This document shows, piece after piece, positions 5,442-37,466 of a stretch of 64,000 bases of DNA; positions within the stretch are counted from its first letter, which is position 1, and each line of letters opens with the position of its first letter. Made by a program: the position numbers and the translations under genes. Origin of the DNA: Lepidodermella squamata (Eukaryota; Animalia; Gastrotricha); contig JBLDXI010000015.1 in assembly GCA_047495785.1 (NCBI GenBank), forward strand, positions 4,650,001 through 4,714,000, in the 5' to 3' direction. A model generated the notes under the pieces. It saw only the letters and a program-made list of their open reading frames with translations, was not told the origin of the DNA and did no database searches.

Positions 5442-5477
5442 TTCTCCGAATCATGTTTTTTCCACTCTTAATTGATC

Positions 5478-5485
5478 CTTTTATA
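5478..5485 (-). promoter_or_regulatory. TATA box of DNase II
   Basis: TATAAAAG on the minus strand about 40 nt upstream of ATG 5441. Confidence 0.55.
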
Positions 5486-5665
5486 TGGGTTTTAAGGCAA
5501 TCAAGTCACGCATTCTGGGAAACACCTGGCCGATAAAGGTTGTTCCCACGGTTAATGAGTACAAATAATATTTCTTTATAATCGTTATTCTGGCGCCATT
5601 ATTTATTTATTTGATTTAAATCAGAAAAATAACTATGGAGAATTAATAAGATATTCTCGTGCTGT

Positions 5666-7810
5666 CTAATTAGTTTTCGCGCTGATACTACGCGACGCTA
5701 CCGTGCTCGGTCGACTTGTGTTGTAACTTTGGCTTCGAGGAGAAAACACTTTTTCTCGCCTTGCCGCGGCCGTTGGAATAATCAAACAGCAAGGTGAACA
5801 AGGGAATGTCTCTGTCTTTTGCGAACGTGGACTCCGAGCCATTTTTTGTCTTGGCCGTTCGTGCCTTTTCACCTTTTTCCCTTGGTAGTAAGAATGATAG
5901 GTATACTTGACATTGGGATTCAACTGATGACCGCTTCTAGCGGAAAGCAGAGGCTCACTATTTTCTTGATCGAAATCGCTGTGGACGTAGCGTTCATGCC
6001 GTGCAGAATCAGCCAGTAGACACGACTCCCACGCCATTTTGTAACACCAAACATACTGATGCAGCGTAACAACGACGTGGTACGGGTCGTACATTTTGAA
6101 AAACTGCGCCGTACGATAGACGTCAACCTCGCCAATGAGCCTCATGCGTTGGTCGAGATAAGCTACTAGAGCCATCATTACCCCGCGCCAAATGCCGCCC
6201 TCAACAAGAGAGTATCTTGTTTTCCGACTTTTGCAACATCCGAAGCCGACTATTTCCTGCTGAACAGGGACAGCCGACACGTCAGCCTCGAGGATGGTCA
6301 CTACATTAGAACTACCATCGTCCAATTGCGATTCAGCGTGCTGTAGAACTGAGCGTAGGAAAAGAATAAATTTTCGATTTGACATCGATGGACGGATGCC
6401 ACTTGAGATCGGCCAGCCTGAAAATTGGAAAACTGTCGCTGACCAATTTTTTCGCGAACTTTTCAATGAAATCTCGAAGGTGTTGAAGCTTTCAAACGTC
6501 TGAGCTTTGCCGAACGCGACACCGCCCAGGTGACTATTTCCACCACAGGTCAGCAAATCGTTCGGCTTTGCCGACTCTGAAATCCACAGTAAAGTGCGAC
6601 TGCCCCGCGATCTCATTAGTTCGAGTAAATTTTCAAGCAAAACAGGCCCTCGAATTGCTACAAATTGGTCCCGCTGAACGAATGACGGCAGAGTCGAGTG
6701 CCAAATCGCGTGATTGAACAACTTCGGACCAAACTGATGGCGTTTAGTTGGCTGATGCAAATTTTCTCGGGAGATTTGACCAGCCGTCCGTTTCGGGAAT
6801 AATCGGCGGTGATACAGGTTGGACAGTTTTCTAAGAATAGCGAACTGCAGTTTTATAGGTTGTTGCCTACGGTCAGCTCCCATGTCAAAAAATGTGTTAT
6901 TTTGACCGAACAGATCGCCTTTCGGTCGTGAGATCAAGTGTCGGAACATGGCGTCAAAGTCAGATGGGTAGCTGGTCATTATTGTTGGCGTCGCGGTCAT
7001 AACTTGCAGTAAACAGTCGTAGATGAATTCGTACATGGCGTAGTGGGAGATTACGTTGCTGCCGCATAGTTCCCGCAACTGGGCTGCCTGGGCAAAGACA
7101 TCTGCCCGGGCCTCTTGACACGCTTGATGAATCAGCAATATCACGCAGGCAACAACTGCCGGCAAATCTAATGACCTGTGAGAGGAGAAATCAAGTGGCC
7201 ATGAAAATATAGTATTATAATGATTTTACTTTCCGATCAGCAATATTGGTCTCCCTTGGATTGAATATTCATGATATTTTTGTTGGAGGATTGCGCGAAT
7301 GAAGTCCAAGAAAGTATGGGGAATAATTGGAACTGAACGTTTACTCCCAACTCTCGGCCAGCAGGTAAACGAATAGACATCTGTAGAATTTCCCTTTTTA
7401 GAGGACAAGAGTTCATGTGATAGTCTCTCCAACCATATAACACAACATACGTTCAGATTCTTGCGACCCGATTCAAAATGATGATAAGTTTTGTGCTGGT
7501 CGGTGTGTACGACGGCGACGCCGGGAATTTCTTCGCCACTTAGAGCGTCGATCTCTACGACGGCGCATACATTTCGCTGGCTTACTGCGTTCCAAAACTC
7601 CTCGCCATTTTCGGGCAAGTGACCAATCAACAGCGAAATGACACGTTTTCGAGAGCTTTCATTAGTGCGGTCAATCCTAACCAGCTGACCAGGCTCCGAT
7701 AAAGCGGTAGATTGGAAATTCGGTAGGCTGTGAAACTCTTGCCGAAAGCTAACGCCCCGTCGAGGCGATAAATAATGATTCAGCCAATAATATCGATCAT
7801 GTGAAGGCAT
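5666..7810 (-). CDS. Tandem-domain protein tyrosine phosphatase-like pseudophosphatase (copy 1)
   Basis: Degenerate PTP motifs occur twice: EFWNAV..NV..VVEI (DFWxMV), SFTCWP/FSGWP (WPD loop), DVF..AAQLR / DVYRTAQ, YEFIYDCLL / QYVWCYK (Q loop). No HCx5R. Introns 7394-7450 (in-frame) and 7176-7229; possible intron 6200-6280. Confidence 0.75.
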
Positions 7811-8012
7811 AATTTCAGGTGCGCATATTTAATAGGAAACTGATCTTTCACTAATCAAGTACGCGATGGGCCGGTAAACAATATCTGAATGAGGTTATAA
7901 TCCGCCTTAAGCTGAGTCGCTATGAGCGACGTCGTGCCTCTACGCACCCAGGCACGTTTGTTTGTGTCCCCTGAAAAAAACAGTCACCTCAAAATCTTTT
8001 TTATTCACGTCT

Positions 8013-9856
8013 TCAAACTGGACTCATGCGCTCATCACAGGCGCCGCGGACGCTTTCCCAATGCAGGCACGACGACCAAGCGATTTTGAAACAAAACTTG
8101 TACTGGTCCTGTAAAATATTGAGAGACATAAAAAAGCCAGAGAGCCATTCAGTTAAACTTACTATTGATGAAAGAATTGCATTTTTGTTGTATAATTTAA
8201 AAATTTGGACCGTTCTGAATACATCGACCTCGCAAAGTGCCTCCATATGTTGGTCCATATAAGTGCTAATAGCAGCAAATGCACCGCGCCATACAGTTTT
8301 CCCGACTTCGTAAATCGTGATGCGACCACTTGTTTTAGCCTCCGGGTTGCTTTGGCCAGACTCTGCATGTTCTTCGGCAGCTCGGAGCGTAGCCAGCAAG
8401 TCGTTGATGCATCTCTTGTCCGGCACTTCTTTGTCAGCCGGCCAGCTTGAGAAATGGAAAACTCGAATTTGCCATGTAACGCGCGGCTTAATCGACGCTT
8501 CGAGGTCAAATGTATTGTAACTTTCATGGCTTTGACAGTTGGAAATAAACGCATCGTTGCGGCTGTTGTAGCCGCTTGCGAGTAAGATATCGACAGGTGC
8601 GCTTCTAGCCTCAGAAAACCACAGCAAAGTTCGGCTTTTGTATTTTGACATCAACTCCAGGAGGCTTGCTATGCTGGGTACAGCTTGTCTAACGGCGATA
8701 AACTTGTCGAGATTGTAGTAGGAGAACATTTTCCAATAGGTAACACCGGAATAATGGCGCGGTTCGTATCTTGAGTTCCATTTACGTTTAGAAGGCGGAA
8801 TAGTATCATAAGTTCCTTGAGAAATTTTCCGCGCTTTTGGCTGGTATAGAGCTGTCAGCTGATTGATCAGACGGAACTGGTCGACTAAAGGCTGGGGTAA
8901 GGACACAATTTTCCCAGATCGGTCACAGCGCCTCTCGCGGGTGAATAGGCGATTGTAGGCTTGTTTGAAATCTTCCCGGCGACCTATCATTATCGTCGGA
9001 GAGGCACTGATCACAAATAACAAGCACTCGTAGATGAAGTGATAGAGGGCGAATTTCGAAACGACATTGCATTGAAATAAACGGCGAATATCGGCAACTG
9101 ACCGGAAGACGTCAACATAGCTAGTAGCACAACCTTGGTGAAGAGTCTGTATTAAACAAGCCGTTACAGCTGCAATGTCCGGCGTTTCACTATAGGAAAA
9201 ATACAAATACGTAGCTTGGAATAATTCTGATTTGTATAACTAACTCGAATAAAATGAGGAAAGGTCGATCATTCAATCGAAATGCCATAAAACTTCGCGA
9301 TATAATTGCCCGTATGAATTCCAGGAAGAAATGAGGCACTTTTGGTAGAAATGTGACTGAATCTGGCTGAGGCCAATCTTTGAAAAACCATAAATAGCTA
9401 GCCAAACGTCGCTCTTCACCGGAATCCTATTTAGAAATGACATGAGCTGGATTCAGCTTCGAAAAAGTCGAAACCCACCTCAACGATAACCCTGCCGTAT
9501 CGATAGAAAGCTGTATCTACTAGTTCTGTTGTTGTCAGAAAGAGATTCTCAGCTCCGATTTGACCTTCGACTTCAACTAATGAAGCGTTCGTGCCGCCCT
9601 GAGTAACCGAAATAATGGTACAAACATTTTCCCGCGACACCGCGCGCCAAAAACCAGGATGATCGTTGATTGACGTCGGCGTTTTACCGATCAAAATCTT
9701 CGGACAGTCGACGTAATGCCGCTGAGTTGGCACCGCGACAAAATAGCATGGCCCGCCATCGCTGGGTCTTGGCCATGCGAACTCGCCTGGGTTTGAAGAC
9801 GCGAAAGGTAATGAATTGAATTCGTCGTAGAAACTGCGCCGATCTCTACTGGTCAT
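8013..9856 (-). CDS. Tandem-domain PTP-like pseudophosphatase (copy 2), about 4 exons
   Basis: SFYDEFNSLP, GFWRAVSRENVCTII, FKDWP, PHFFLEFIRAI, DVFRSVADIR, YHFIYECLL, FSSWP, WRG, VDVFRTVQIFK, DQYKFCFKIAW. Colinear with copies 1 and 3; 3' end slightly uncertain. Confidence 0.75.
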
Positions 9857-10239
9857 GTTTCTATTCGGTTACACAGAAGGCAGGTGTAATTATTCAGGGA
9901 TAAATGAATGGTAAAGTATAGGCATGCGTGTGCACTGAAATCGTCGCCGCTGCGGTCACCTTGCGGCTGGCTATATGTGTGATGAAAAATTAATTGGCGC
10001 CGACACTTGGCAACAATCGAATCGCGGCGCGGCCGATTAGTGCGAGATGAAAAAACTGGCAAACACAAGTCGTATTATTATTATTATTGTTCCATTTTAT
10101 TTCCGGGAAAATCGCAACTTCCCATAAATTAATATTATAATACTCAATAGCAAAAATTGATCATATATCAGCGGGCTGAAGAGTAGTTTTATTGTGCTGA
10201 GAATATTAATATTAGCGAGAAATGTAGCACGGTAGTAAA

Positions 10240-13200
10240 TCACATGATGGCCTGATGATGCTGGGGGGTTGATTTTCGCGACAACAACGCCGCGAAATCA
10301 AAGTGTTGCGAGGCTATAGTCAGCCGGTCTTCGTACTCTGTCTCGCCGTCGTCCGACCGCGAGTCGTCGCGCACCGAGCACGACATCAACACGCGAATGA
10401 GCTTAGTCGACGGCGACAGCGTAGGCAGTCGCCACGCCAGCCGCGCCAAAACCGCCGGCAGTCTCGGCTGCTCACGGGCCGACAACAGCGATATAGAAAT
10501 CGACGGAGATGCCGAGTAGTCGAAAATCGGCGCGCCCAGCATCAACGCATCGTCGCCGTCCAGCTCAACGGCTATTACCGGGTCGACCAGTCTAGGCATA
10601 ACAACACTACCGCCATCGGTCGAATCGTCGATCAGCCGGCCCTGGGTGATGTCAATTACAACAAATACAACCAATGTATTAGAGACTAGAGTGGTCTCCA
10701 GCGAGAATTCAGCGCCAAAAGCGGCGGTCTTGTTGGCGATTGACGACGAAGAAAGACTAGCACCGTCGAACACATCGCGCTTTTCACTTGAGTCTGCTAA
10801 AGAGATTTCGCAGAGTTTCTCCTCCAAGGTAGAGATTCTGTTTAGAACGGCTTTACTGTCGCCATCAGGTGGCCGGAAAATGAGTGGTTTTATCGATTTG
10901 AAAGTAGCACCGCAGAGTAGACCGACAGCTGAGTCGAATAAATTTACCGAGGCCCGAACGAAATGAATGTGAGCGCCCGCTTCAAAGTCTGCTGTATGTG
11001 GAATGTCCTGAAATTCATAAAAGAAAAGAAAATATCACCTACAGCGTGTCCCAGAAGTTGCGAAACTATTTTTCAACTATTCTGGCAACTTTTATAGGAA
11101 ATTCAACTAATTTTATTAAATTAGAATATTCCATCTTTTATCCGCGATTTAACCGAAGAAATAAAAAATGTACCGGAGAAAACCCGGAAAATCCCGATGA
11201 TAACTATTTCGGTAATTTTCGATATTATACCCGGTTGGGCCAAAATTATCCGGTCTCTTTCAACCCCATTAACAAAAGACATGCTTGATTACTATTCTTG
11301 TGATTTTTTTTGAAATTTTCAAAAATTTGTCTGGCCATGAGATGGACTTTTCATCTCTCATTTTAGAGTTTCCGTGTATTTTTCCATGTATTTTCTTTGC
11401 TTGCGTTACCTATGGGATAAGCTATATTAATTAATGACAAAATTAGGGCAACTCACAAGTCTGAAAGCGACATCATTCTCAGTATTTGGAAATAGGGTCA
11501 AGTTATTTTCACTCTGTAGCACCACGATTTCTTCGAATTCTCGCGAGCCATTAGCATCGATGGCGGTCGAGACCTCAGGCCGGAAAGGAGGCTGGTTCAC
11601 GTGGTGGTGGCCCCCGTTTTCCATAGGATGGTCGTCATCGCCAAATGAATCGTAAGACCGGCGGCCGTAGTAACCGGACGGCCTCAGCACACTAGCAATT
11701 CGAAGAACGACTTCAACCGAACACTGATCGACCGGCTTAACAAATAGCGATCTGATTTTCAGATTAATTAACGCTGAGAATGAATTTGCCACCGGAGAGA
11801 GACTGATGCTGGAACAGGTGAAAAGGAAACTGCCAGATAGCATCGTACCAAGAGACTTTGTCGCCGCGACTTGTTGACTCAACGCGACCAGTTCTTCGTC
11901 AACATCACACAATTGAGAGTAAGCTTTAAGGTGGAGCAGCGCCCATATTCTTCGTCTCAATAGCTGATGCTCTTGACTAGTAGATGACTCGCTGACAATG
12001 TAGCACTCTCGTAACAAAAGTTTTAAGGCGGCTACCGCTAGATTCGAGCAACGAGAAGACAACCAAGCACCTATGCAGTCGAGCAGCAAAGGCTCGGCGG
12101 CGGTTTGAGCTGAGTAAGGCAACTTACAGCCGTTATTAGCGGCTTCTAGATAGATCTCAGCCAACTCGAATGCAACTTGCCGGGACCATCGCCTCATGGA
12201 AGATGCCTTCAACGTGGCGAGAAGAGATTCTGATAACTCGATCAAGGCACTGACAAAATTATCAGGCGTTGAACTGGTCAATAACCGGGCTAATTTATCG
12301 GAGTGAGATTCTGGCCTCGCTGGTACATCACCGTTTTTCGCAGCACTTCGATACCGCAACAACTGGAGAATAGAAACAGTGGCTTGGAGACACTCGGACT
12401 CATCTTTCACCGCGGTCAAAAACCCTGATTGCCTACCCAGGCGAGACAAGGCCTTTAAAGCGTGATGTCCCAACAAATTCACATCCACCGGGCTTTGAGA
12501 CGACGGCGCTGAGATTGACGACGAGGCTAATACTTGGCACGCGGCGGCTGTTTCGCTGAATAAAACAAAAATAAACGCGTCGGTGACACTTTGCGGCGAC
12601 GGATGAGTGACCTTGGCGCCAATCGACAGTTGGCGAGACTCAACTACGACACTGTGTGCGACTTGAAGCGCGTAACTTGCCAGCCGGTTCGCGGCAGCAG
12701 ATGGCTTCAACCGGGTCGGAATAAACTCGGATGCCGCCGCCATTCGAAATATGACAGCGGCTTGCCTGGCCAGTAGCTCCGCCCGCGTCTCAATCAAAGG
12801 GTGCTTCCCGCTTTCTAACATCATCAACGGGCATGGCGAGGTCGGCCAATCACTCTCAACACCTGGAACTAGTCGCACGCAGTCGATATGAGACGGCGAT
12901 TGAGCGAGACATTCGTCAATCCACACAGCTATCGGCCGACCGGCGTGGCAAAAGCAATTTGCTGCCGATTGGGAGATAACCGCGTCGATCAAGTCAAGCC
13001 GAGCTAACGCATCGTCGAATAGAGAAAGAGCTGCGTAACCTCTCGCAACTGCCTCCTCGAGTAGGAACATGTTGGCGAAGTACAACCGCTCGTCACTAGC
13101 GCCTTTTAAGGGGGCTGCGGCCATAGCGGCTCGGCAGCACCGTTCTCGCTCAACACGAGCGACTTCTTCAATCCTCCTCACTCGTTCTATCGCTTGAATC

Positions 13201-13915
13201 GCGAGCAAGGAATGTAACGAAGCCGATAACCGTTCACAGGCAAACGGGTCCAGCTCAAGCCGGTTATTGTAGGGCTGGAATGAGAAGCAATGCACGTTTC
13301 GATTCGCATTATTCAACCCGCGAATTTTTTCACTCAGCTGCTGCTGCGCTCGATTTGTGGTCGAAATCAAGGACGTGATTTGCGATTGAGGCTCGACGTG
13401 TAAAATTACGAGACCGGTCAGATCGATTCGGTTGACCGGGCATTCGGGGGTCGGGACACTGGCGTCTAACCACGACTCGATGCGCGACTTGACCGTATCC
13501 CACTTTATAGTATCCGCGTCTGAAATCGTGAGCCAGTATAACCGTAACAAAGGCGGGCCGATAACTGACAGCCATGCGGCCTGTTTCTTCGCTGAGGAAC
13601 CAACGAGGAGCCACGTTGGAGACGGTTTGTCCGGCAGCATCTCAATCCGAAACGAGACGTATCGCTGAACTCCATCGGCAAATAAACTGGAATGACAATA
13701 CTAAGTTATGCTAAAAAAATAGCAAAATTGCACCCACGCGTATGGAGCGGCTGTTCCGTTTAAGGTGGCGCAAATTCGCTCTTTCCACGTGATGAACGAC
13801 GCTATATCACCGCTGACTGCACAAAATTAATGAGTTATTTAGTATAATAGGCCCTTCCCATATTCAGCGTATTCAGCTCACCTGAGACAGTAAAAACATC
13901 TCCACCTGCCATCAT
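10240..13915 (-). CDS. TRAPPC10: Trafficking protein particle complex subunit 10 (TRAPPC10/Trs130), divergent, 4 exons
   Basis: PLLRLYWLTISDADTIKWDTVKSRIESW resembles PFLHIYWTECCDTEVYKATVKDDLTKW; FANMFLLEEAVARGYAALSLFDDALARLDLIDAVISQ resembles FCEYFMVQEELAFVFEMLQQFEDALVQYDELDALFSQ. Two small 5' exons from ATG 13915; intron 11008-11456 joins the last exon in frame. Confidence 0.8.
11040..11426. mobile_element. Decayed Tc1/mariner-like MITE inside the last TRAPPC10 intron
   Basis: Left end TACAGCGTGTCCCAGAAGTTGCGAAA; reverse complement of right end TATAGCTTATCCCATAGGTAACGCAA (18/26 identical). TA at both ends; accounts for the unusually long 449-nt intron. Confidence 0.55.
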
Positions 13916-14712
13916 GTGATCATTGAGAATTATAATTTCTAAAACGACAAAAAGAACCGCTATTCGAAAACAGTATCAACGTTTATTTGTTTTGCTCGAT
14001 CTCTTCCTTCGCAATATATATATATTTATATAATATGTATAACAGTTCATTTTATATACAGTCATATAACATTATCATATAATTCCAAGTCAACAAACAA
14101 CAGGCCATGAATATCGGTCACTTATTGCGTTGGCACATGTAAACTTGAAGAAACTGACGAATATTGAGGACGAGGAATGAACGAATACGATAGGTCAATT
14201 TGTCATTTCAAAATTCAGCAATTCATACAGCCGTAAATACTGATACTTGAAAAATCAGAACACAAAGCACCCAGTGTTAAAACAAGCAACATTTCATGAT
14301 ACGAGAAATAAAAAACATTCGAAATTGCATATCAAAAGACTCGCAATTTTTACATCCTCGGTTTTTGGTAGAAATTGAGAACGAAAAGCAGGGTTGCAGC
14401 CAACGCTTCATTTTCAACACGCGCACACGCAAGACACGCAGATCGGAATGCGAAAAATTCCTCATCATACGCAAAATAAATAATATTATTATAAAAAAGA
14501 TGCGACCGCCTAGTCAAAAAATCAAAACGTATCTTGCATCGCATCAATACTGGTATAATATTTACAAAATACTATGCCGAGTTGAATTTTGCTCACTATC
14601 AAATTGGTAAATAATTTCATCAGAGGCGGGCGGACTCGCGGATAACTTCAAATGAAAAGCATTAAAATTTGAAGAGTAACTGAATAATAATTTTGAATCA
14701 AACAAGCGTCTA

Positions 14713-17700
14713 TCATACAGTGCTGTCGCCTATGGTCGGTTTCTGCGTCAACACTATGCTGCCGGCGTTACTTGGTTGCGAGGGAGCAGCATTGTGAGGG
14801 TATCGCATCACCAATTGTTGAAATTGTTGAGTACTTGCTGGATTGGGTCTCTGCAAAAAAATTAACATTATTAATGAGCCTGAACTCAAAATGTCTCCTT
14901 ATTTCATCTAAATTTTGTTTAAATGAAAGCACTTGGTGAGGTCAAAACTGTTTCCCTTTGCTCCGCTGGACATCTGATATCTAAAATAACTCACTTCGGA
15001 CAGTTGAGGCACGATCTCGTCGAAAATTTGCCGCTCATTCAAATCATCAGCGTCAGCAAACGTCCGCTGGATTTGTTTTCTCCGGACAAACAATCGCCAG
15101 CGCTCGACGGCTCTCCGCGCCAGGGCCATTCGGCGTTCGCGACTTGCGCGTCGCCGTTTGTAGGCGAGTTCAGCGCCGAGAAGCAGGCACCCGGCGCCGA
15201 TACCGCCTACGACCAGCATGAACACGCCGGCCATGTTGCCGAGACCGAGCGTAGCCGGCACGGACTCTTTGCCAACGCAGCGGGCGCCCCGTCGGAAAAT
15301 GTACTTGTTGTCGAGCTTCTCCATATCGCCTCGCTCGTGGAACGACAAAATCGCAATATTCACGTCTTGCATCCACGGAGAGTGCTTAGGTAGCCCGACA
15401 GCATAACCACTCCTCCCGAACACCTCGCCTGCAGTCACCAGTTCGCAGTCTAAAAATCGACATTAAACGTTAAAAAGGATTAAAAGAGAATATTATCTAA
15501 TTACTGTGTGCAGCTTCGTAATAAAGGCGACTTGAATCCCAAATAAATGCATGCAACCGGCCGTTGACAACATCACGTATCGCATCGTCCGGGTTATCGT
15601 AATTTCCATTCGCTTCCATCGTCCGGAAAATTGTGGCGAGTTCAGCTTGGCTCCGGAAGTAGTTTGCCACTGCTGAGTTGCGCACAGTAGCAAATCTGAA
15701 CTGCTCGGTCGGATTTCTCAGACGCTAAAATTATACAGATAATAACGCTGTTTAAGGGTGAATTCATGAACCTACCGGATCTGTGATACCAGTTATAGAA
15801 GCTTCTGGTCGGTCCAACACAAGGAAAGCGGCAAGACTAGAGAAAAAATTAGAATTAAAACATATTTAAGGAGGTTTTCGTCTTCTGACTAACTTGGCAG
15901 TGTATGAAGCTACGATGATCATCGCGAAGCCGGCCCATACTATGCCGAGTACACGAGCAGAGAAGGACCGTGGCGTGCCTTCACCAATGCCAGAATTGAG
16001 CAAAACACCCCAAGCGAACCAGACAGCGGTCGATAGGTTGAGGGCGTCTTCTTCCGCGTCGTCTTGAGCTGCGAGCTTGAAGCGTCCGAAAGGCGAGAAT
16101 CGGTCGAACAGGTACAGAAAAGCAGCGACCACGTGGACCGCCACAAAAACTAGCAGCCAGAGCGATTTCTCGAAAGGCTGCAGAAATGATCCGAGACTTG
16201 AGTCCTTGGCAGTTTTTCGAACTAAAATGGTCATCCCTTGGTACTTGAACGGTTTAGAAAAATCTACGGCATCGGCCCGCTCGGGCGTGACGACAAAAGG
16301 CGCGACGATCATGTCGGCTTTGCTGCGCAGCAACTCGCCCACCATGCCGTCCCACTCCTGCTCGCCACTCGTCTGATTCACCACGATATCGCCATGCCGG
16401 CCGTCAGGGCTCAGCGACAGCTCGTAGGAAACATTCAACGCGCCGGCTAACATTTGAACCAACTCAACTACGTAGCCTTTACAGCAGAGTAATTCGTAGC
16501 GATTCGAGTCGTCAGACGTGCGTTTTGCTTCTGCGGACGAAACCGGCCCGGCTGACTGATCCTGCGCGGTTAACCGCCTCCGACACAGCACGATAGGCTC
16601 AGGATCGTCGCCCTCCGCCTGCGGATTGGCTAGGGCGGAACAGTTTGGCTGAGCATCGGGCCCGCTTTGAGTATTGGGCGGTAGCGGCATCGCTGTCATG
16701 AAAGGCTTTTCAGCAATACTGACCACGCGGATGTGCTGCGCTAGTCTACGACCCTTCGGCCGCTGCCGGCTGCCACCCGGCCAGATGATTTCGTCATGAA
16801 ACAAACGCAGCCGTTCGACACCTTTGCCCGTCTCATACGCGCCGACCGAGACGAGCCCGGTGCCGGACGATGACGCGCTGCTGTCGGCTATCGTCACCAC
16901 CTCGGCATTGTTGTCATTCAAATTATCGGGTGCGGTGTTGAGAACATCGTAACGAGCCGATATTCGATCGCCGAACTCGTTCATCTCCAATCGACCCGTT
17001 CTCGCACCGAGCGGTAGGCCAACATTAGGCTCGCGAGAGTCTTCGAGTCGCACGCCTCTTATAGACGCGAGTAGGTGAGGCGCTAGTCGCAGCCACCTGT
17101 CGTCAAGTGGCGTCGATACGCAACCGGCTGGGGGTCGTAATTGGGCTAAGTCATCAGGCGACTCGCGCCTGAATTTCGAATCGAATTCAATAAGGCCTTT
17201 CGTGGCCAAAGCTAATGCATCGAGTAACAGCTCCGTATTGGACCGGCCGAATTGCAGTTGACCCGCGAGAAGACCGGACGGTCTACTGGGGGCGCTTAGA
17301 GCCGGCTCTGAGACCAGCCAAACGGATGTTGCATCAAACAAATCGGCTGTGCTTCCGCTTAGGAACAGCGCAGTGGCTTCTTGCGTACTGTTCAAAAAAC
17401 ACCTTAAATTATCATTTCGTTTTTTTCGCTCGAGGAACTCACGTTAGATAGGCGAGAAAAACTCGAGTATGTAACACCGCTAGGGTGGATACAACTGAAG
17501 ACATATTCGCTTCCGGAACTACGCTTATCACCCGTTCGAGCTATTGGGATAAAATTTCAATTAGTTTTTTCCGTCCTCATTTTCATTGATCGATCACAAC
17601 GAACCTCTGACGGTACATCAAAAGCAACACGAACAACAAATGACATGCAAGACTCTGACAACATTGAAACGGTAACACCATGGTGACAATGAGCATTGAT

Positions 17701-18392
17701 TTTTCGGCGGCGCAACTTACATTAATGCCGAGTTCGGAAGCCCGTGTTTGTAAATAGGCAAGAAAAATGCGCCCGTCCTGTGAAGCCGAGTGAATGAGAT
17801 TAGCGTTTTGGAATCCTAGTTTTGAGAGCAATCGCAGCCACAGGTCAGCCTGCTGTAGCTGCGCGGGAACGACGCGCATGAGGTACTCGTGGGAATTCTG
17901 TATTATGCATCGAAAACAATGATTAATTAATCAACCGGTGAATCGGCAATTAGATCCGCGTCGTACCTTATCACTGAATACGTTCTGCCGCGCTGAAGTA
18001 GAAATGACTGGAATTTTGTAAAAACCGTAAGTGAAAGAAGCAGTAGCAGTGACAATTTCGTCGTCCGGCCGCAGCGCGACAATGGCGGCGTGCGGCGGCT
18101 GGCGCGACATCACGTCGCACATGTGCTCGACGAAGCGGATCGGGTTGTCGCCCGACACGATGGCCGGCACGGCGTTGATCGCGATGCCGGCATTGGTGCG
18201 CTGCAGGTAGGCGTTGAACGTCGGCACTGCCTCTTCGACGACGCGACGATCGTCCGTCGACGAGATCAGCACGCTGATCGTGTAGGCGGTCGGTCCCGAG
18301 GCAGCGCAGAGCTCGATGACAACGAACAGTTCGAACAGATAGTTGATCAAACAATGTTGGAGTTTGCCAATACAGAACGTAAATGGAATCAT
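14713..18392 (-). CDS. GRIN1: NMDA-type ionotropic glutamate receptor subunit 1 (GluN1/Nmdar1), about 8 exons
   Basis: FTYGFYKIPVI, FSDK, CCKGYVVEL, WDGMVGELL, FSKPFKYQG, SFLQPF, DRFSPFGRFKL, WFAWGVLLNSGIGEGTPRSFSARVLG, SYTAN|LAAFLVLDRP (split by an intron), AFIWDS, GEVFGRSGY, NMAGVF. Last exon ends ...IGDSTV-stop at 14713. Start codon approximate. Confidence 0.95.
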
Positions 18393-18791
18393 AAAAACAC
18401 CTAAAAATAAGCAGAAAAAACCACCTTAAAACCAACTGCTATCAAACACTTTAGTTGAGAACTATTAACAGAGGCGGCTGTGATAAGTATTTACAGCACA
18501 GAGTTGATCGTCAAACGTATATTACCAAGTGATCGCAACTCGGAAAAGCGCACGCAGAAATTTGTATTTTGTTGAAACGTAATACCTTCAGTCACGTTCG
18601 AATGCAGCGAGTTGAGAAACCGAAAACACAAACAACAAGATCACTTCGCAATATATTTACACAATGTTGCAAATGATCGCCTCGATAATCGCGCACGAGT
18701 AAAAAGATTATTATTTGTATTTGCAGACTAAATTTTCGTTCGCGAAAGTAAAGACGAGTCAAAATGTCATTCCACACATGCAACTTGGCGA

Positions 18792-27500: not shown

Positions 27501-29157
27501 CCGTGAATTTCAATCTCCCGACGAGGAAATGAAGAAAATTGTATTGAAAGTTGTGAAGCAATGCTGCGCGACTGATGGTGTTGAAGCGAGTTACATTAAG
27601 GAGGAAGTTCTACCGCCGTTTTTCAAACATTTCTGGAATCAACGAATGGCTATGGATAAGCGGAATTACCGCCAGTTGGTCGATACTACTGTTGAAATCG
27701 CGAGCAAAGTCGGCGGCGCTGAGATCGTTTCTCGCATAGTCGACGATTTGAAAGACGAATCTGAACCGTACCGTAAAATGGTCATGGAAACCTGCGACAA
27801 AATTGTTACGACCATGGGCGCTACTGACATCGATTCTCGCCTTGAAGAGTTGCTGATCGACGGCATTTTGTACGCATTCCAGGAGCAAACGTCCGAAGAC
27901 GCTGTTATGCTGAACGGCTTCGGAGCTGTGATTAACTCGCTTGGAAAACGCTGCAAACCTTATCTGCCTCAGATTTGCGGTACAATCTTGTGGCGTTTGA
28001 ACAACAAATCGGCGAAGGTTCGCCAACAAGCCGCTGATTTGATCGCGAAAATCGCTGTTGTGATGAAGGCGTGCCAGGAGGAGAAACTGCTCGGCCATCT
28101 CGGCGTGGTCCTTTACGAGTACCTAGGCGAGGAGTACCCCGAAGTTCTCGGGTCTATTCTCGCGGCGTTGAAGGCTGTTTGCAACGTGATTGGCATGTCG
28201 AAAATGACGCCGCCGATCAAGGATTTGCTGCCTCGTCTGACGCCAATTTTGAAAAATCGTCACGAGAAGGTGCAGGAGAACTGCATTGATTTGATTGGTC
28301 GTATCGCAGATCGTGGCTCTGAGTTTGTTTCTGCGCGAGAGTGGATGCGTATCTGCTTTGAACTTCTCGAGCTGTTGAAGGCCCACAAAAAGGCGATTCG
28401 ACGCGCTGCTGTGAATACTTTCGGCTACATTGCCAAGGCTATTGGCCCTCACGATGTGCTGGCGACACTGCTGAACAATCTTCGAGTTCAGGAGCGTCAG
28501 AACCGTGTCTGCACAACCGTCGCGATTGCCATTGTTGCCGAGACGTGCAGCCCTTTCACGGTCATTCCAGCCCTTATGAACGAATTTCGAGTGCCTGAGC
28601 TGAACGTCCAAAACGGTGTTCTCAAGTCGTTTTCTTTCATGTTTGAGTATATCGGTGAAATGGCCCGTGATTACATCTACGCCGTCACTCCACTTCTCGA
28701 AGATGCCCTCATGGATCGTGACCTGGTCCATCGTCAGACTGCAATGTTCGCAATTCAAGTGAGTTTTTCTATAAAATAATAAAAATTCAACCTTAATAAT
28801 CGTCTATTTAATTTTTTCCAGCATTTATCAGCGGGCGTTTTCGGTTTTGGATGTGAAGACGCATTGACTCATCTGCTCAACTTCGTGTGGCCGAACATTC
28901 TCGAAACATCGCCCCACGTCGTGCAAGCGTTCTTCGGCGTCGTCGAAGGCATGCGGCTGTCAATCGGCCCGCAGCGCATTTTGCAATACACAGTTCAGGG
29001 TCTGTACCACCCGGCGCGGAAGGTGCGTGAAATCTACTGGAAGGTGTATAACACGCTGTACATGGGCGCCTCGCACGCGCTCGTGCCCGCCTTCGTGCGC
29101 ATCCCGAACACTCAAACGAACACTTTCGAGAGATACGAGCTTGACTACGTGGTCTGA
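24502..29157 (+). CDS. SF3B1: Splicing factor 3B subunit 1; exons 24502-24801, 24865-24988, 25481-25554, 25608-25835, 25894-28758, 28822-29157
   Basis: RWDETP repeats, [10 protein letters not shown]-like motif, HEAT repeats nearly identical to animal SF3B1 ([33 protein letters not shown]), C-terminal RYELDYVV. All six exons join in frame with GT-AG. Confidence 0.98.
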
Positions 29158-29590
29158 CCGATATAATTAATAAAAATCTTCGTGTTCGATTATAACAACC
29201 GTTTTTAACCATAATCAAGATCGCACTCCATTAAAACGTTGGAAATGACCGAGGGAAATAATGATTGTGAAGAGGACGAGGTAGTCGAGCGATGTAATAT
29301 AGAATTGGGTGGCATATTAGATACTTTACTTTTTGTTTATAAAACACCTGTCAGCGTTGTCTCGTGTGGCATATGTATATGTACATATTTGATTAAAAAC
29401 AAATAAAAAGCTTTCTGTTGTTAATTTTCTTTGTTGCCGTTTTTATTGGTGGACGATCGGTGGGGTTAATACAAAATTTGAAGTGAAAAAATACCGACAC
29501 CAGAAACGAGTGAAAAATGTCAGATCAACATTTTTGAGGTAGAGTTAAGGAAATGGAGAAGTTGAGGTAGCTTTCCATAGGAAGGACAAT

Positions 29591-30688
29591 TTAGACAATC
29601 GGATAGCTGGCCATGTTGGCAATACCGCACATGTTGACACCACGAGCGATTTTAGCGTAGCCCTGCTCGCCCCAGCTGGCACCCCAGCTGTTCTTGACCA
29701 GCCAATAGGGCCTGCCGCTTTCAGTTCCGTAGCCGACGATGAGCATGCCTGAATTCAGATAAACAAAAATAAAAAATTTGAATATAAATGTGAAGCTTGC
29801 CGTGGTTCAATGACTGCCTGCAAGTGCTATCGGTGTATACGCCCGTCTTGTAGTAGTAAAAGTTCGTTGTTACTTCAAAAGCGAACGACACTGGACCTTT
29901 GTTAACCGCCTGAATAGTAGGTTGCTGATGAGAAAATACTCAATCATTGTTGGAATTTTTACCTGCATAATCGCATTCTCATCGCGAGGAATGGTTACGA
30001 AGTAGGGGCGCGTGGTTGAAGCAACCGAGCTGCCTCTGTTGAAACGGCAAGTTCGGCTATCTTGGCCTACGTAAGGGTACGCAGATTCCGTGTTGATGCC
30101 ATTTTGGCCAACGTAGGTGAACGCAAAGTTCATCAAACCACCAGAGCATCCAGCATTGCCGAGATTCCACGTGCAGTCACACAGGTTCTGCTCGGACATC
30201 GAAATGAGCCGCTTGTTTTTGATGTAGTAATGGCCCTCGAGAGCGCCTGTAGCAGAGAATGACCAGCAAGATCCGCAATTTCCCTGATTTTTAACTGGGG
30301 TAACAGCGCCCTGTTGACGCCAGTCGATGGACGCCGCAGCTTGGATCCCAGTCGAATTGAAAACGCCAACTTCACCTGCTGAATCTGGCAGAGGCAAGTT
30401 GGTGTTCAGGCCGAGTTTCGCTTTTTTCAGCTCATCCATCGTAGATGCAGCGAATGCGTTAAGCTCGATAGCGTAAGGGACCTCGTTCTTCTGATGCAAC
30501 TCGTTGTGATGCTTCACCAATTCGTAGTTCTTGTGAAAAATTCCACGGCGCAAGTCTTCTTCATCTCGAGCAAATTGAGCTTCGGGATTTTGACTCTTCC
30601 ATTGCATCCAGCTGCGCTCTTCATCACTCGGTTGAGCAGATGCGAGTGAAACCAGGGCGATTAAGGCAACGGCGATAATTGACTCCAT
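29591..30688 (-). CDS. CTSL: Cathepsin L-like papain-family cysteine protease, 3 exons
   Basis: Signal peptide, I29 propeptide with ERFNIN-like [48 protein letters not shown]|[34 protein letters not shown]. Confidence 0.96.
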
Positions 30689-30730
30689 TGTGACCGTGAC
30701 GAGCTGTTGAGTATAAGCTCGCAAATCGCC

Positions 30731-30738
30731 CTTTTATA
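30731..30738 (-). promoter_or_regulatory. TATA box of cathepsin L
   Basis: TATAAAAG on the minus strand about 45 nt upstream of ATG 30688. Confidence 0.6.
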
Positions 30739-31202
30739 GCGCTCATGCTTCGGTGCGAGTGTCCGAATCTTTCCAACGTGTTTTCAAAACATGGACATAT
30801 AACTGGTAGATGTTTCAAGTAGCAAATGCGCAACAAGAAATGGGTAACAAAGCGCGATGCGACGCGAAAAGACACATCAGCTCTCGTAAACAACAACACC
30901 GAGGTGTGTTTTTTTATGAGCTAAACGCACTTCTCACGAATTGACCTCGTTCTCACCTGCAGGCATCACTACCCTTATCGCAATACCATTCGGTAATGGA
31001 ATTTATTTTTAAACTTGAGATGATGTGCTGATTTGATTCGTTCGTATCGTGATTCGGTACTTAGTGATGAAAAATGATTGAATGTAATTTATTCAGTCAA
31101 TATATATTATTAGGTACCATTTTATTTTTTGCTTCCGCGCGTAATAAATATTTTTAAAATTTGATGCTGTCAAATTAAGTTCGAGTATATGATAATGATT
31201 TT

Positions 31203-32945
31203 TCAACGGCATACAAGCTTTATCCATATTCCGTTAACTGGGGAAATCGTGAAAGCCGACTGAAGTTGCATTTCATCGCCAGTTCTCTCACATGTTTCAA
31301 TTCTGTATTTCCGAAGAAGGTTCACGAGTGTCAGTTTGATTTCCAGCAAGGCGAATCTCATTCCGATGCATATTCGAGGACCAAAGCCGAATGGTAGGAA
31401 AGCAGCATCGCTCCTGGTCGCATGAGTAGGGTAGTCTTTCAGGAATCGTTCGGGATAGAAGAGACCTGGGTCAACCGGGCCCCATTGCTCGGCATCTCGA
31501 TGAATCGACCAAACATCGGCAAGAACTATCATGCCTTTCGGCACACGAATCCCGTTTATTTCAGCGTCTTCCATGGCTAGCCGATTGATGATAAGCGGCG
31601 AGACTGGATACAAACGTAGCACCTCGTTTATGACAGCATCCAAGTAAGTCAAGTCAACAACATTGTCGTAGTGAGGCGTTTTGGCTGGGTCAGAAAAATC
31701 GCGCTCGATTTCGGCCACAACTCTTTGCTGGACTTTCGGATGATTCGCCAGCAAAAATGTAGCGAATGCCAAAGCGTTGCTCGAAGTCTGTTTTTGAAAT
31801 TGATCAAGTAAGTTTCAAAACTATTAGACCGACGAGCTATAGGTGAATTAGCTAACCTCGTATCCAGCGATCATGAACAGCATGCTTTGCCCAGTAATTT
31901 CTTCGATTGAAAGACCTTTATGCCCATGCGGCAACTCGCCAATCTGATTCTCTTCACATTCCAGCATCATTTGCAGCAAGTCCTGTCTAGCCGGTCCATC
32001 GATGCGATTGCTTTCTCGTCGAGTTTTGATGATCTCACCTATCATTTTCAGCAATGTATTGCGAGCTTGAATCATCGGTTCGCGGGCAAACTTGGCGCGA
32101 AAAAACGACAATTTTCTCATTAACGGGCCGAGTTCGGGTATAACTATTGCGACCTTCATCGGCAGTGGCGATGAGAAGATACTCTGAAACATAGAAGTCA
32201 ACGTTTCAAGCATAGGATTGCGCTCCTTGCCACAGGTTTTCGCGCTGTTCAACTCGATACCGAACGCGGTTTCCGAGATTGTGTCCAGCGTTAATAGCTT
32301 GAAGCATTCAAAGATGTCGAACCCGTCAGCTTCATGCGCTCTCTTATCGATCAGCTCCATGAAATCATTTTGGCATTTCGTCATCAGGGGCATGAGAGCT
32401 CGCAGTTTGCCGGCAGAAAAGGTTGGATTTGCGATTGTTCGAAGCCGTTTCCACCTTTCGCCCCGGGCTACGAACATCGTAATCGGATCACTAATTGGGA
32501 AGATAAGAGATGAAGACTCTATTCTGTTCCTATAAATTACGTCGTTGTGTCGGGGTTTGGCTGAATGGGTAGAAGTTTTCGGCCATGGAAACTTGGAAAT
32601 TGCTTAATGAAAACCTGAGTGACGAAGTTGACGTCGCTCGTCACGAGCGTGGGCCAAGAACCTTCAGATTTCGGCCAGATCGATAACAAGAAAATTTACA
32701 AAAACCAAACTGAAAAAACCTTCGTAGTAGCCGAACAGCTTGCCGTACTTTTCAGTCCATTTCGGGATGACAAGGTGCCGATTTGCAGCTTCAGCGAAGG
32801 ATGCAGCATTGCCCAATAGCCAATGGGGTTCTGGTCCTGAAATGCCTTCCTTTTGAAATTCTTTGAAAGCGAATAAACGCCGATAGAGATAGAAGCATAG
32901 TCCAGCTACGAAAGGCACGAAGCACGCTGCTATAATGAAACTCAT
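31203..32945 (-). CDS. Cytochrome P450, clan 3 (CYP3A/CYP5-like), 4 exons
   Basis: N-terminal anchor, GISGPEPHWLLGN, WKRLR..ANPTFSAGKL, AGYE|TS (I helix), EVLR (ExxR), PERF, FGFGPRICIG heme ligand. Confidence 0.95.
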
Positions 32946-34876
32946 TTTCTTTGTAATGAGAAAGGTTTTTTATAACTTTCCCGGAGCGCACGCGAGTTTT
33001 TTCACCCTAAAACGTAAAAAAAACACCTTATAACGATCGAGCTAATCAAGACAACTTCAACCATCCCCCACCTTAAGCCCTACCATTGGATTTAATGCAA
33101 ACTGTCATATATAAATTTCGCCACCTACGTTTTGTTTTACCTATTTAGCAGTTTTATAATATAACTTGTTTCTCCTAATAATGTGTGCAACCTATAAATA
33201 TGTGTGCCAGATGAGTTGGCTTAATCTCGACATTTTAATAACACGTAGATGAACTCTTTAAATGTGAAATACCAACTAAATTTAAGCACTAATAATGGGG
33301 TGGCTAAAAATAACTCGTTTCTTCCATGACGCCGATGTAAATGCACGTGTAGCACACGTGAGACATTTAATTCGTGTAAAAAAACGGCACACGGCCATCG
33401 CAGAGGCAGTCATTAAGGACCACGCAACAAACTACAGAGGAGATGACTAAGAATTTTTTTAGATACTGCTCGAAAAGAACGCCCGATGAGAAAATGCGTG
33501 CTATTCTTGCTACTTCAAGAAATGATGTCAACGAATTATTTTATAAAATTATAAAAAAAAATCCCAAAGCACCGCCTTAACAATTTTATAAAAAGTGAAA
33601 AAGTTCGAAGCACTTTTTTAATTTTTGCCAAGCTGCATTTTCGCAACTTAATTCTTGCCAAAGGGGCGCCACCGGTTATTAGGTAGCCCCTGATTACTCT
33701 GTCGATGCGCTTCGATGCACTTCTGACGCATTTTTAAGCCGTGTTTTGGGCGGCTTCTGGGTTGTCTTAGCAGGCCAGACAGCGGGATGGCGCCCATCGC
33801 AGAGACGGACATTTGAATTAAGTCACGATGCTCGTGGTGTCATACAATTTTCGAAGCCTCTCTCCGAACGTGTCGGGGTCGAGGGCGACACGGGCAAACA
33901 AATAAATTTTCGGACGAAAAGTCTAATCTCTGCGTCCGAGAGCATCAAAGATCCTGAGAATATGATTATTTTCGTTTCGGGAACGCTCCAAAATTGAATA
34001 AAAATAATTGAATTTCACAATGAAAAAATTTATTTTTAGGTCGGTGAAATAGACCAATGAGGTGCAAGGTGCACTTTTCAGTTCAGACAATCCTCATGAA
34101 GTTTCACGTCCTTCAAGTGAATTTAAATTTAAGATCGATACATCTTGTTGTCGAGTCTGCAACGCTGCACCAGGATACTTGCAAAAATATTAAAAGTCTA
34201 TTTCAGAAGAGCCTGCCTATATACTTATCATTCATTTCGCCCGCATCTGGGTGATGTTTGCGGTGCTCATCGATTCGGACGCGATGAGCAGTCATGAAAG
34301 TTGGAAGGCCGCGGACGCATCGAGATGGCCTTTCGCGTGGTGTGTTGTAGGCGCGTGCGCGTTGTTTACTCTATTTGTCGCTCGTCATCAGCGCATACCA
34401 AACGCTGCGCGACTGAATGGCAGTGGCCGATATATTGCCATTATAATCGGCCGCATTTGTACCTGCTTTCAGTTTTAGCCCTACCTATATATGAGTCTAA
34501 TGCGAAATACGAAATAATAATTCGCATTTAGAGCGGGCGTAGACGCTTCTGTATTTAGCATATATCGCATTTAAAGGCGATACGACGAACGCGCATCACC
34601 TTTATAGCTTGGCGAGTCTTGCTTTTCACTTTGTCGCATTATTATTGCTTACCTAGAAATAGTTGTAAGTACATTGTTTTATTTTCGCCCACTCAAGTAT
34701 TATGTGCCGCAGTAAACACCTCCTTTATATTGGATTCTTCGATCGAATTTTTTCGATTCTTGCAGGCGGGTCGTAAATAACATTGTGAAAAAATTCTCAG
34801 CGTGAAATTTATTCGTCTCATATTTGCATGAATATAATAGGTGTTGTATTTATTTGCGAACACCTACAGCTGTGAT

Positions 34877-37466
34877 ATGATGGCGATGACCGAGCGCTCG
34901 GCTATTAGCTTATCGACAGCCAGTGGCCGGCATGCATTTTCCGGCTCTGAGGCCGGCTCAGTTAATCTAAGCGACGGTCACGTCGAGCAGCCGATCAATA
35001 CTCAGAATGACACCTTATTACCACGACAACATCAGCAGCAGCAACAACAACAGCCGCTTGACCACAGCGAAGACGAGAAAATTTCTATTGATTTCGCTGC
35101 GAAAATTCACGCTGACGAGTATCAACTGGAAAAGCATCAAATCGAGCTGTTAGACGCCGACGACGGTGAGTCGCAAGACGACCAGCGGCCATTCGAAGCC
35201 GCTACTTCGGCTTCAATGCTGTCGCCGCGACACGGCGTGAGCTTCCGCGAAGAATTCGCTCGCCTGCCTGACTTTTCGCCGCCTAAAAATGTCGGTCGAA
35301 CAGCTTCACCGCCCTACCCTGCCGGCTACAGAATCTCACAGGGAGTCCAAACGCCAGTGTTGACGCTACTCGGCGGCCCCGATGAAGAGCGGGAAACAGC
35401 GCCATTCCACAACGTGACATTGAATGAGTTCGTGGGCAGAGATGTGCCCCTGCTCATCGGCGAACTGCCGCCGAAATCAGAACCCTCTGACTACGCCACC
35501 TTTTGGTCAGCTGTCAATCGCCTCAACGTCTGCGGCATTGTTACCGTCAACCTTGTTCGAGGTGAAAACGAGGGCGCTGAGCCGTCGCTTCCTTGGCCAA
35601 ACACTCCGGGTATGTTTTTGATAACTTTTCCAACGCTAATGAGCAATTTAAATTTTTTTTATCAGGAACTGAGGCAATGTTTGCCGGAAAAATAATCGCA
35701 CACAACGCTCATACCGAGACTTTTCGCAGTTTTCAAGCAACGTCTGTGCGTGTTCAAGACCTCGATTTCGGCTATGACCGCGAAATTGCGACCTGGTCTT
35801 TCACCGCCTGGCCTACAAGCCACGTTGTCCCGGCTCTACCGCATTTTTTCCTTGATTTTCTGCGCGTTGTCATTCAAAACACCTATTTCAGCTGCCGAAC
35901 AGGGCAGCCGCTCTTAATAATCGACAGAAACGGCCTTGACGTAGCGGGTCTGACAGCTGGTGTTGTAATGCTGTTATATCAAGCTTGCGAACAGAGGCGA
36001 GCCGATGTGTGGCGGTGTGTTTCCGATCTCCGCGCCGCTTGCCGACGCAACGTCGTGTCAAAATTCGCCATGTACGAATTTTTGTACGACTGCTTGCTTC
36101 AGGTTATGTGCGCCACACCTACTATCATGTCCGGCAACTTTCGTCGCGCCTTCCGCCACTTGCTACGCCGAGGTGCTCCTCTCGTCCGATCACCCCGGCA
36201 GAATGGCGATAACGCGAGACGTGTGGCGCCAATCATGGAACAATTCGATTTGGTATGCAGTCTCAGCGCAATGTATCGTAGTCGTGTTCTGGGTAAGAGC
36301 GCGAAGTCAACAACGCCTGGATCAAGCAAAAGAAGCAACTTCGAACCCCGCCACTACAAAAGCATTCGTTACTACAATTTGCCGTCATTCACCCATGCCA
36401 AGCATTTCATGGCGATTCGCGGCATTATTCATGTCAACGAATTGCTCGAACTGATGGCAAAGAAGTACAGCCGGACTTTGCTGTGGTTCTCCGAAACGCC
36501 ACGGGCCGACGAAATATTGACAGGGAATCAGCACGATGGCGTGTTGATCGGCGAAGTTGCGGCTTATGGTGTATTTTATTCCTACGAATTGGAGGCGCCA
36601 ACATCGCGAGGCCCGTGGCGCGTGACTGTCGTTCAATTCGTCGGCTGGCCTGCGTTTTGCGGAGAAAGACCCGCGAGGCCATGCCGCGAGTTGATCGTCA
36701 CCTTGCGCCGGGTTCTTGAACACGCTGATGCGGTTGCGTCCTCGTTCGCGTCGACGTGGCCCAATGAGGATGCACCGCTGCAGCCTGTGGCGACAGTGTA
36801 CGAGGCCGAGGCTGGCTGCTCGACGTGGCGAGGGGCGATGGCTGCGTTGGCTGCCTCACTTGACCAACGCATGTCTAGATTTCTTGAGGTGGATGTGTTC
36901 AGAACCGCTCAGATGTTCAAAATCTTTGATCCTGATAACATCGTCATTTCACCGGTAATTTCATATTCTTTTTTTTAAGCTGTTTTTCACTCATCGATTT
37001 TTTGTTTTAGAAACAGTACACGTGGTGCTTCAAAATGGCTTGGTCATCCTATTTGCTATCTAACGGCAAAGCTCGCCAGGCAGAACTCGAGGGTGGAGAA
37101 CCGTTGGAGACTACGAAACCTAAAGCTGTTTTAAAAAGCACTACATCCATAAAAAATGATGAAATTGCCGATTTCAACCCATACGGATCCGAGAAGTGCT
37201 TGTACTCCTTCCCGGCTATGCTAAATAATGGCGGCAGTTCAGATGATAACAGCTTGTCACTCGAGGATAGACCGATCGAACCACCTGTTGTGCCGGTTTA
37301 CCGCGAATTGTTGGGCGATCAAGGTGAATTGATGTCCAATGATCGAATTGATCAATATGAACTGCAACTAGATGGCAACATTTATCAACGTCAGTATTTG
37401 AAGAGCAGCCAGAATAGTCGAGTGAAATCAAATCGCAACAGTGTTAAAGCTAAAATATCGCTTTAG
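34877..37466 (+). CDS. Tandem-domain PTP-like pseudophosphatase (copy 3); exons ~34877-35609, 35666-36954, 37011-37466
   Basis: SPRHGVSFREEFARLP, FWSAVNRLNVCGIV, SFTAWP, PHFFLDFLRVV, PLLIIDRNG (in place of PIVVHCSAG), YEFLYDCLLQVM, SRTLLWFSE, FVGWP, WRG, VDVFRTAQMFK, KQYTWCFKMAW. Clear paralogue of 5666-9856. Confidence 0.78.

Follow-up and report, generated by a model that had tools for sequence, protein, structure and literature searches.

Pseudophosphatases are recognised regulators, and the inactive second domain (D2) of the tandem D1-D2 module of receptor protein tyrosine phosphatases (PTPs) is increasingly viewed as a docking module. In LAR, liprin-alpha is docked through D2, as seen with LAR D1D2 (PDB 6kr4, PMC6994669), and D2 of PTPRK recruits Afadin (PMC9640194). 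PTPRU of humans, the only receptor PTP known to contain two pseudophosphatase domains, is thought to compete with its active relatives for substrates (PMC7320164). A further group of PTP-like pseudophosphatases, EGG-3, EGG-4 and EGG-5 of C. elegans, is cited in PMC8269279 and PMC5603424. Here we analyse three genes of the gastrotrich Lepidodermella squamata located within a single window, the whole 64,000-nt stretch of contig JBLDXI010000015.1 from position 4,650,001 to 4,714,000. From the sequence of this window, the original prediction had proposed a lineage-specific, expanding family of soluble tandem PTP pseudophosphatases derived from a receptor PTP. Our results indicate that the encoded proteins carry two domains of PTP fold arranged as in receptor PTPs, that both domains are predicted to be inactive, and that the family is small, old and under purifying selection.

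Results

The three paralogous genes, referred to as copy 1, copy 2 and copy 3, are located at 5666-7810 (minus strand), 8013-9856 (minus strand) and 34877-37466 (plus strand) of the window. Their frames are intact at the predicted positions, and the listing of open reading frames (ORFs) and the reading of the exon junctions agreed in this respect. For structural analysis, an AlphaFold2 model was generated for residues 95-644 of P0001, the product of an ortholog of copy 3 on the ENA metagenome contig L005, which was chosen because it is a natural uninterrupted single ORF; the model hence represents the copy-3 type. The underlying alignment consisted of P0001, the exons of the window, a family member from a third species and seven receptor PTPs. 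The model reached a pLDDT of 80.3 and a pTM of 0.81. The top Foldseek matches were the solved tandem D1D2 structures of LAR, PTPsigma, CD45, RPTPalpha/epsilon and PTPRZ/G (E 1e-25 to 1e-20), and VIA-align superposed the model onto tandem D1D2 structures with Z 24-26 along 437-465 residues over both domains (rmsd ~4 A), compared to Z 23 for single PTP domains. An ESM Atlas model of P0001 similarly matched tandem receptor PTPs (TM 0.67). At the level of profiles, Pfam PF00102 scored above the gathering score with D1 of copy 3 (49.4 bits), D2 of copy 2 (28.9 bits) and P0001 (38.3 bits) and below it with the pieces of copy 1 (18.3 and 16.7 bits); a phmmer search of the PDB yielded a match to PTPRJ (E 2.6e-6). 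The fold of the classical PTP superfamily is thus found by both structure and profile, and the tandem D1-D2 with its conserved linker, as it occurs in receptor PTPs, by superposition and by alignment with tandem receptor PTPs. As the structural matches extend across both domains, the modelling shows that both repeats carry the PTP fold and are placed as D1 and D2 of a receptor PTP, which bears out the predicted PTP relationship together with the tandem placement.

The catalytic HCx5R motif is absent from either repeat of all copies, as predicted. At the D1 positions corresponding to V-H-C-S-A-G-x-G-R, copy 1 has L-I-G-K-S-L-D-L-P, copy 2 I-L-F-D-E-T-P-D-I and copy 3 I-I-D-R-N-G-L-D-V; Cys is replaced by Gly, Phe or Asp and the P-loop Arg by Pro, Ile or Val. 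The replacement sequences PILLIGKSL, PFLILFDET and PLLIIDRNG (the latter from the pseudo-P-loop at 35908-35949, plus strand) had been given exactly. Loss of the WPD acid was confirmed for all six domains, which in copies 1, 2 and 3 have WPR, WPQ and WPT (copy 3, 35809-35832, plus strand) in D1 and WPI, WPA and WPA (copy 3, 36646-36672, plus strand) in D2. The D1 Q-loop has lost its Gln, with QY being changed to MY or LY (MYEF). The D1 region corresponding to the KNRY- and DYINA-containing stretch of PTPs is shortened by about 30 residues in copies 1 and 2 as well as in the third-species member, which is encoded on contig L006 of another metagenome. In proteins of the copy-3 type, the D1 KNRY region is unrecognisable and was modelled with a pLDDT <50.

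In D2, the Cys is replaced by Glu in each of the five known members, all of which also share an invariant W-R-(G/S). The latter aligns with the end of the P-loop, G-R-(T/S)-G, indicating that the P-loop Arg is retained. The Q-loop Gln is retained as well (QY/QF), and the KNRY region is shortened. The distance from Glu to Arg is fixed at 6 in PTPs, but was found to be 7 in copy 2 (pseudo-P-loop TIYEVGKTVWRG, 8283-8318, minus strand), 9 in copy 3 (VYEAEAGCSTWRG, 36796-36834, plus strand) and in the L005 ortholog, 10 in the L006 member, and 34 in copy 1, where the pseudo-P-loop TILE...WRG (6182-6298, minus strand) carries an insertion of about 25 residues. The pattern E-x6-8-R previously assigned to D2 therefore applies to copy 2 (x6) and copy 3 (x8) but not to copy 1, in which 33 residues lie between Glu and the Arg of WRG. 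The family motifs PH(F/T)FL(D/E)F.R, SRTLLW.SE and A(T/S)PTIM were recovered in three of three copies. None of the domains displays the hallmarks of an active classical PTP, namely HCx5R, the WPD Asp, and the KNRY loop together with the Q-loop Gln. Judged from the sequence, we infer that both domains are catalytically dead and that a role in dephosphorylation is excluded.

When D1 and D2 of one protein were compared by BLASTP, no similarity was detectable, indicating that the tandem is old and did not arise by recent internal duplication. In the alignment, the ATPTIM motif falls on the conserved linker that joins D1 and D2 in receptor PTPs. A phase-2 intron in the 'Ser' codon after HC (HCS/AG) occurs in copies 1 and 2 and in the L006 member, and an intron of identical position and phase is present in D2 of L010, a canonical tandem receptor PTP of the same genome; the corresponding intron of another PTP of this genome, L009, is located two codons upstream. 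This junction is therefore real and its site is common to a canonical receptor PTP, as had been proposed. The phase-0 intron before (K/D)QY is also real in copies 2 and 3 and is shared by the L005 ortholog. However, its interpretation as a conserved PTP junction did not hold, as no exact counterpart was found among the canonical PTPs of the genome that were read, L009 having an intron two codons away. Taken together, the linker alignment, the age of the tandem and the HCS/AG intron lead to the well-supported conclusion that the family descends from a receptor-PTP D1-D2 module. The predicted derivation is thus upheld, also with regard to the fold arrangement.

No segment resembling a transmembrane helix was found in any exon product of the three copies. 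The maximum KD19 hydropathy did not exceed 1.82, a value located in the buried helix after the P-loop, compared to 2.50 for a real transmembrane control. Upstream of D1, the sequences accordingly lack the signal peptide, ectodomain and single transmembrane segment that define receptor PTPs. The tandem D1-D2 is otherwise typical of receptor PTPs, and a 75-residue ORF at 34251-34478 (plus strand), about 400 nt 5' of copy 3, encodes a transmembrane-like stretch followed by RHQR, probably noise; both would be compatible with cytoplasmic exons of ordinary receptor PTPs whose ectodomain and transmembrane exons had been overlooked. This explanation is highly unlikely, because in-frame stops lie just 5' of all three ATGs (that of copy 1 at 7810) and AG acceptors precede the ATGs by 4 nt (copy 2), 8 nt (copy 3, TACAG) and about 30 nt (copy 1). 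The spacers amount to only 203 nt between the stop of copy 2 and the start of copy 1 and to about 400 nt between copy 2 and the gene upstream of it, leaving no room for upstream exons at these two copies. In addition, the sequences 5' of the start, including the hydrophobic ORF, show no conservation when the window is compared to L005, and the L005 ORF begins at the homologous Met. The earlier notion of soluble proteins without upstream exons is therefore supported by these sequence features. A second alternative is that the genes are decaying, functionless pseudogene relics of a receptor PTP, in line with the loss of every catalytic motif and with fast-evolving N- and C-tails. However, all exons of the three genes are open and flanked by canonical splice sites, and intron positions have been kept between species. 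In the long exon, copy 3 and the L005 ortholog are 68% identical at the protein level, with a nonsynonymous difference (pN) of 0.22 and a saturated synonymous difference (pS) of 0.84; synonymous sites are saturated among the paralogs, too. The identity maintained despite saturated synonymous sites demonstrates purifying selection, thereby substantiating the selection suggested before. It is strongest on the linker and D2, the identity between copy 3 and the ortholog being 23% in the N-tail, 58% in D1, 67% in the linker and 72% in D2. Among the five members of three genomes, 51 columns are invariant. Given this conservation, we attach next to no credence to functionless relics.

The whole 121-Mb genome was searched with the long exon of copy 3 and with a profile built from the five family members. 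Exactly these three loci were obtained (E 1e-59 to 1e-166); ordinary PTPs are encoded by about 20 genes in the same genome. Identities among the paralogs amount to 35-45% over more than 320 residues and, together with the E values of the genome search, exclude chance resemblance. Phylogenetic analysis resulted in the tree (copy 1,(copy 3, L005)) with a support of 97/98 for the ortholog pair. The L006 member shares with copy 2 the D1 Phe at the Cys position, the P-loop remnant S/D-E-x-P-D and the linker motif DFKQ.Y..LFTR; it is probably the ortholog of copy 2, an assignment for which the tree provides no resolution. As copy 3 is closer to its ortholog than to copies 1 and 2 and synonymous sites are saturated, the duplications predate the species. 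The family consists of three old paralogs and is small and old rather than 'expanding', the term used in the original prediction.

To our searches of 5.8 billion protein clusters, P0001, a 662-residue uninterrupted ORF, was the only close relative; it is 67-69% identical to copy 3 and shares its phase-0 intron before KQY. When 1.84 billion representatives were searched exhaustively with a profile, P0001 (E 3e-57) and P0002, encoded by exon 1 of L006 (E 2e-12), were followed only by ordinary receptor PTPs, with E values of 8e-7 or weaker; the profile alignment held many exon fragments and had only 179 profile positions, which weakens the blank for other phyla. Word-index protein searches with the copy 3 long exon and with P0001 each returned P0001 alone, and nothing was returned with the copy 1 long exon. 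No relative was found on JGI metagenome contigs scanned with two family peptide patterns, and phosphatases are not mentioned in the genome paper (PMC11660948). With two relatives in these collections, both on metagenome contigs, the family does appear lineage-specific as predicted and restricted to a narrow lineage, probably the chaetonotid gastrotrichs.

Some additional observations were made during these searches. P0008 (L007 222-1139 / L008 199-1116) was considered as a family member and rejected, its score being no better than that of ordinary receptor PTPs. This G+C-rich metagenome fragment encodes a transmembrane segment followed by a PTP-like D1 with the P-loop PLLVLR in place of PIVVHC. 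It may represent a membrane-anchored pseudophosphatase of an unrelated organism, and its ORF may run into an intron at the P-loop. Contig L006 contains an N-run scaffold gap (2867-2966) flanked on either side by the same sequence of about 45 nt, an assembly artefact within the family gene, located just after the D1 P-loop intron. Among the PTP loci of the L. squamata genome, the pairs on contigs C33/C58, C9/C21 and C10/C48 display near-identical scores with hidden Markov models (HMMs) and near-identical layouts, and possibly represent haplotigs that were not collapsed or segmental duplicates of recent origin. Very weak PTP-like matches on C10/C48, and on C24 at 1.00 and 1.78 Mb, may stem from further divergent pseudophosphatases.

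All introns of the three copies are of the GT-AG type, 52-56 nt long and A+T-rich (GC 0.23-0.40). Copy 1 (minus strand) consists of exon 1 (7230-7810), which ends in phase 2, encodes D1 as far as the pseudo-P-loop PILLIG(K) and matches PF00102 with E 0.0019, a 54-nt phase-2 GT-AG intron in the codon that follows 'HC' (7176-7229), and exon 2 (5666-7175), encoding the remaining D1, the ATPTIM linker (6977-6994), D2 and a C-terminal tail of basic/Ser-rich composition. An intron inside the long D2 P-loop of copy 1 was considered and rejected; the GC content of 0.53 compared to that of the introns and the absence of splice signals identify this stretch as a coding insertion. In copy 2 (minus strand), exon 1 (9479-9856) encodes the N-terminal half of D1 and ends with the phase-0 donor GAG/GTGGGT. 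The following intron 1 (9427-9478, 52 nt) had been missed previously but is needed, because exons 1 and 2 are out of frame without it; the introns that had been listed were all confirmed. Exon 2 (9245-9426) comprises the D1 WPQ and PHFFLEF region up to the pseudo-P-loop PFLILF(D) and is followed by the phase-2 intron 2 (9190-9244, 55 nt). Exon 3 (8163-9189) encodes the remaining D1, the ASPTIM linker (8988-9005) and D2 including its pseudo-P-loop, with the PF00102 match on D2 at E 1.1e-6. After the phase-0 intron 3 (8109-8162, 54 nt), exon 4 (8013-8108) provides the D2 Q-loop helix (DQYKFCFKIAW...) and the stop. Exon 1 of copy 3 (34877-35609, plus strand) encodes an acidic/Gln-rich, poorly conserved N-tail and the N-terminal half of D1. 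Two introns, both of 56 nt, separate it from exon 2 (35666-36954; PF00102 E 6e-13), which contains the remaining D1 with WPT and pseudo-P-loop, the ATPTIM linker (36112-36129) and D2 with WPA and its pseudo-P-loop, and, via the phase-0 intron before KQY (36955-37010), from exon 3 (37011-37466) with the D2 Q-loop helix (KQYTWCFKMAW...) and a poorly conserved C-tail.

Copies 1 and 2 are arranged head to tail, and copy 3 is located 25 kb away on the opposite strand. A TRAPPC10-like gene lies upstream of copies 1 and 2 and a DNase II gene downstream. The resulting minus-strand run from 4823 to 13640, composed of the TRAPPC10-like gene (11427-13640 and 10240-10827), copy 2, copy 1 and the DNase II gene (5441-4823), has spacers of about 200-400 nt and an AATAAA for each gene, an operon-like layout. 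The nematode SL1 leader was absent from the genome, and a nematode origin was rejected on this basis. Three tandem paralogs of the sulfatase-like DUF229 family (PF02995) are situated 3' of copy 3 (39031-40992, 45881-47485 and 48973-49947, plus strand), and a sestrin (PA26) gene 3' of its ortholog (L005 6830-8227, minus strand). There was no synteny around copy 3, as none of the flanking genes of L005 matches the window. The G+C content of the window is about 44-45%.

Discussion

We favour, with slightly better than even confidence in the statement as a whole, the reading that the family represents a soluble, stand-alone D1-D2 module with two dead domains that acts as a non-catalytic docking protein or decoy, its function being proposed by analogy. 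Both domains of this free module are pseudoenzymes as judged by sequence, no membrane anchor is present, and the protein would bind partners rather than dephosphorylate them. Docking may occur through D2-type surfaces, as between receptor-PTP D2 and liprin-alpha or Afadin, and the soluble scaffold or decoy would draw partners or substrates away from active receptor PTPs, similar to the competition proposed for PTPRU. We prefer such a role because the strongest constraint is on the linker and D2, because D2 docks partners in receptor PTPs, and because PTPRU provides a precedent. Several points weigh against this reading. Docking or decoy activity is proposed by analogy with known systems and does not constitute a result. 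HMMs specific for D1 and for D2, based on 16 tandem receptor PTPs, did not discriminate the repeat type. The fold was modelled for the ortholog of copy 3 alone, copies 1 and 2 being placed by their identity of 35-45% and weak Pfam matches. Finally, as the Arg of the P-loop and the Gln of the Q-loop are retained in D2, some binding of anions or phospho-ligands is possible.

This last point also favours a pseudophosphatase of the EGG-4/5 or STYX type, in which the dead pocket would grip a phosphorylated residue, for example in the activation loop of a kinase, and shield or sequester it. The PTP fold is present, D2 with its invariant Arg is the most conserved part, and EGG-4/5 are cited in PMC8269279 as pseudophosphatases that regulate MBK-2. 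However, D1 lacks the P-loop Arg in every member, and the KNRY/phosphotyrosine loop is deleted in D1 of copies 1, 2 and L006, disordered in the copy-3-type model and short in D2. The variable spacing between Glu and Arg in D2 indicates that the phosphate cradle is not conserved, and the Glu that invariably replaces the Cys would either repel phosphate or form a pair with the Arg. Binding of phosphotyrosine in the classical pocket is thus probably absent: it is unlikely for D1, as there is neither an Arg nor a recognition loop, and doubtful for D2 in view of the variable P-loop, the Glu in the pocket and the short recognition loop. We consequently regard the phospho-ligand explanation, the main rival of the docking or decoy reading, as unlikely; the EGG-like phosphoprotein-binding or anti-phosphatase role of the original prediction retains the D2 Arg in its favour and is otherwise doubtful. 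A more specific version of the decoy idea, tentative and improbable when taken in its entirety, is that the proteins are gastrotrich-specific soluble receptor-PTP 'tails'. The D2 Glu would here pair with the P-loop Arg, leaving the pocket permanently self-occupied, and the diffusible decoy would titrate liprin- or Afadin-like D2 partners, or the wedge and D2 surfaces of active receptor PTPs, with each of the three old paralogs possibly serving a different set of receptor PTPs.

A free D1-D2 in which neither domain retains the catalytic motif and which is nevertheless under strong selection would constitute a natural experiment on a catalysis-free tandem PTP scaffold, and the family would help to access the partner surfaces of receptor PTPs in a phylum that has hardly been studied. 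The interest is specialist rather than general, the family being small and of narrow range. Compared to the D1-D2 modules of LAR/PTPsigma, PTPRZ/G, RPTPalpha/epsilon and CD45, the family has the same fold and arrangement (Z 24-26 over ~450 residues), its linker is homologous, its D2 is likewise inactive and lacks the WPD Asp, and the phase-2 intron after HC is shared. In contrast to these, it is without ectodomain and transmembrane segment, its D1 is dead too (no Cys, Arg, Asp or Gln), in its D2 the Cys is exchanged for Glu and the P-loop is expanded, and the identity is only 12-18%. Soluble D1-D2 proteins are not otherwise known except as alternative isoforms, of which cyt-PTPepsilon is an example; these isoforms are active.

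With PTPRU, the family has in common that both tandem domains are inactive and that competition for partners or substrates of active relatives is proposed. However, PTPRU is a transmembrane R2B receptor with a MAM-Ig-FN3 ectodomain that has kept HCx5R and is inactive by structural rearrangement, whereas the family described here is soluble and has lost the motif; it is an analogue and not a member of this type. EGG-3/4/5 are likewise soluble, PTP-like in fold, devoid of catalysis and members of small lineage-specific families. They differ in that they are confined to nematodes, contain one PTP-like domain instead of a tandem, and have been reported to bind a kinase in its phosphorylated form. 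The large profile search, which returned only ordinary receptor PTPs after the two members, gave no indication of a relation to EGG proteins, a direct comparison not having been made. The D2 docking modules of receptor PTPs similarly employ an inactive PTP-fold domain for protein recruitment, and D2 is the most conserved part here; there, D2 serves an active D1 in cis, whereas no domain is active in the present family. Seen against these systems, the family is a modest variation on the known theme of dead PTPs.

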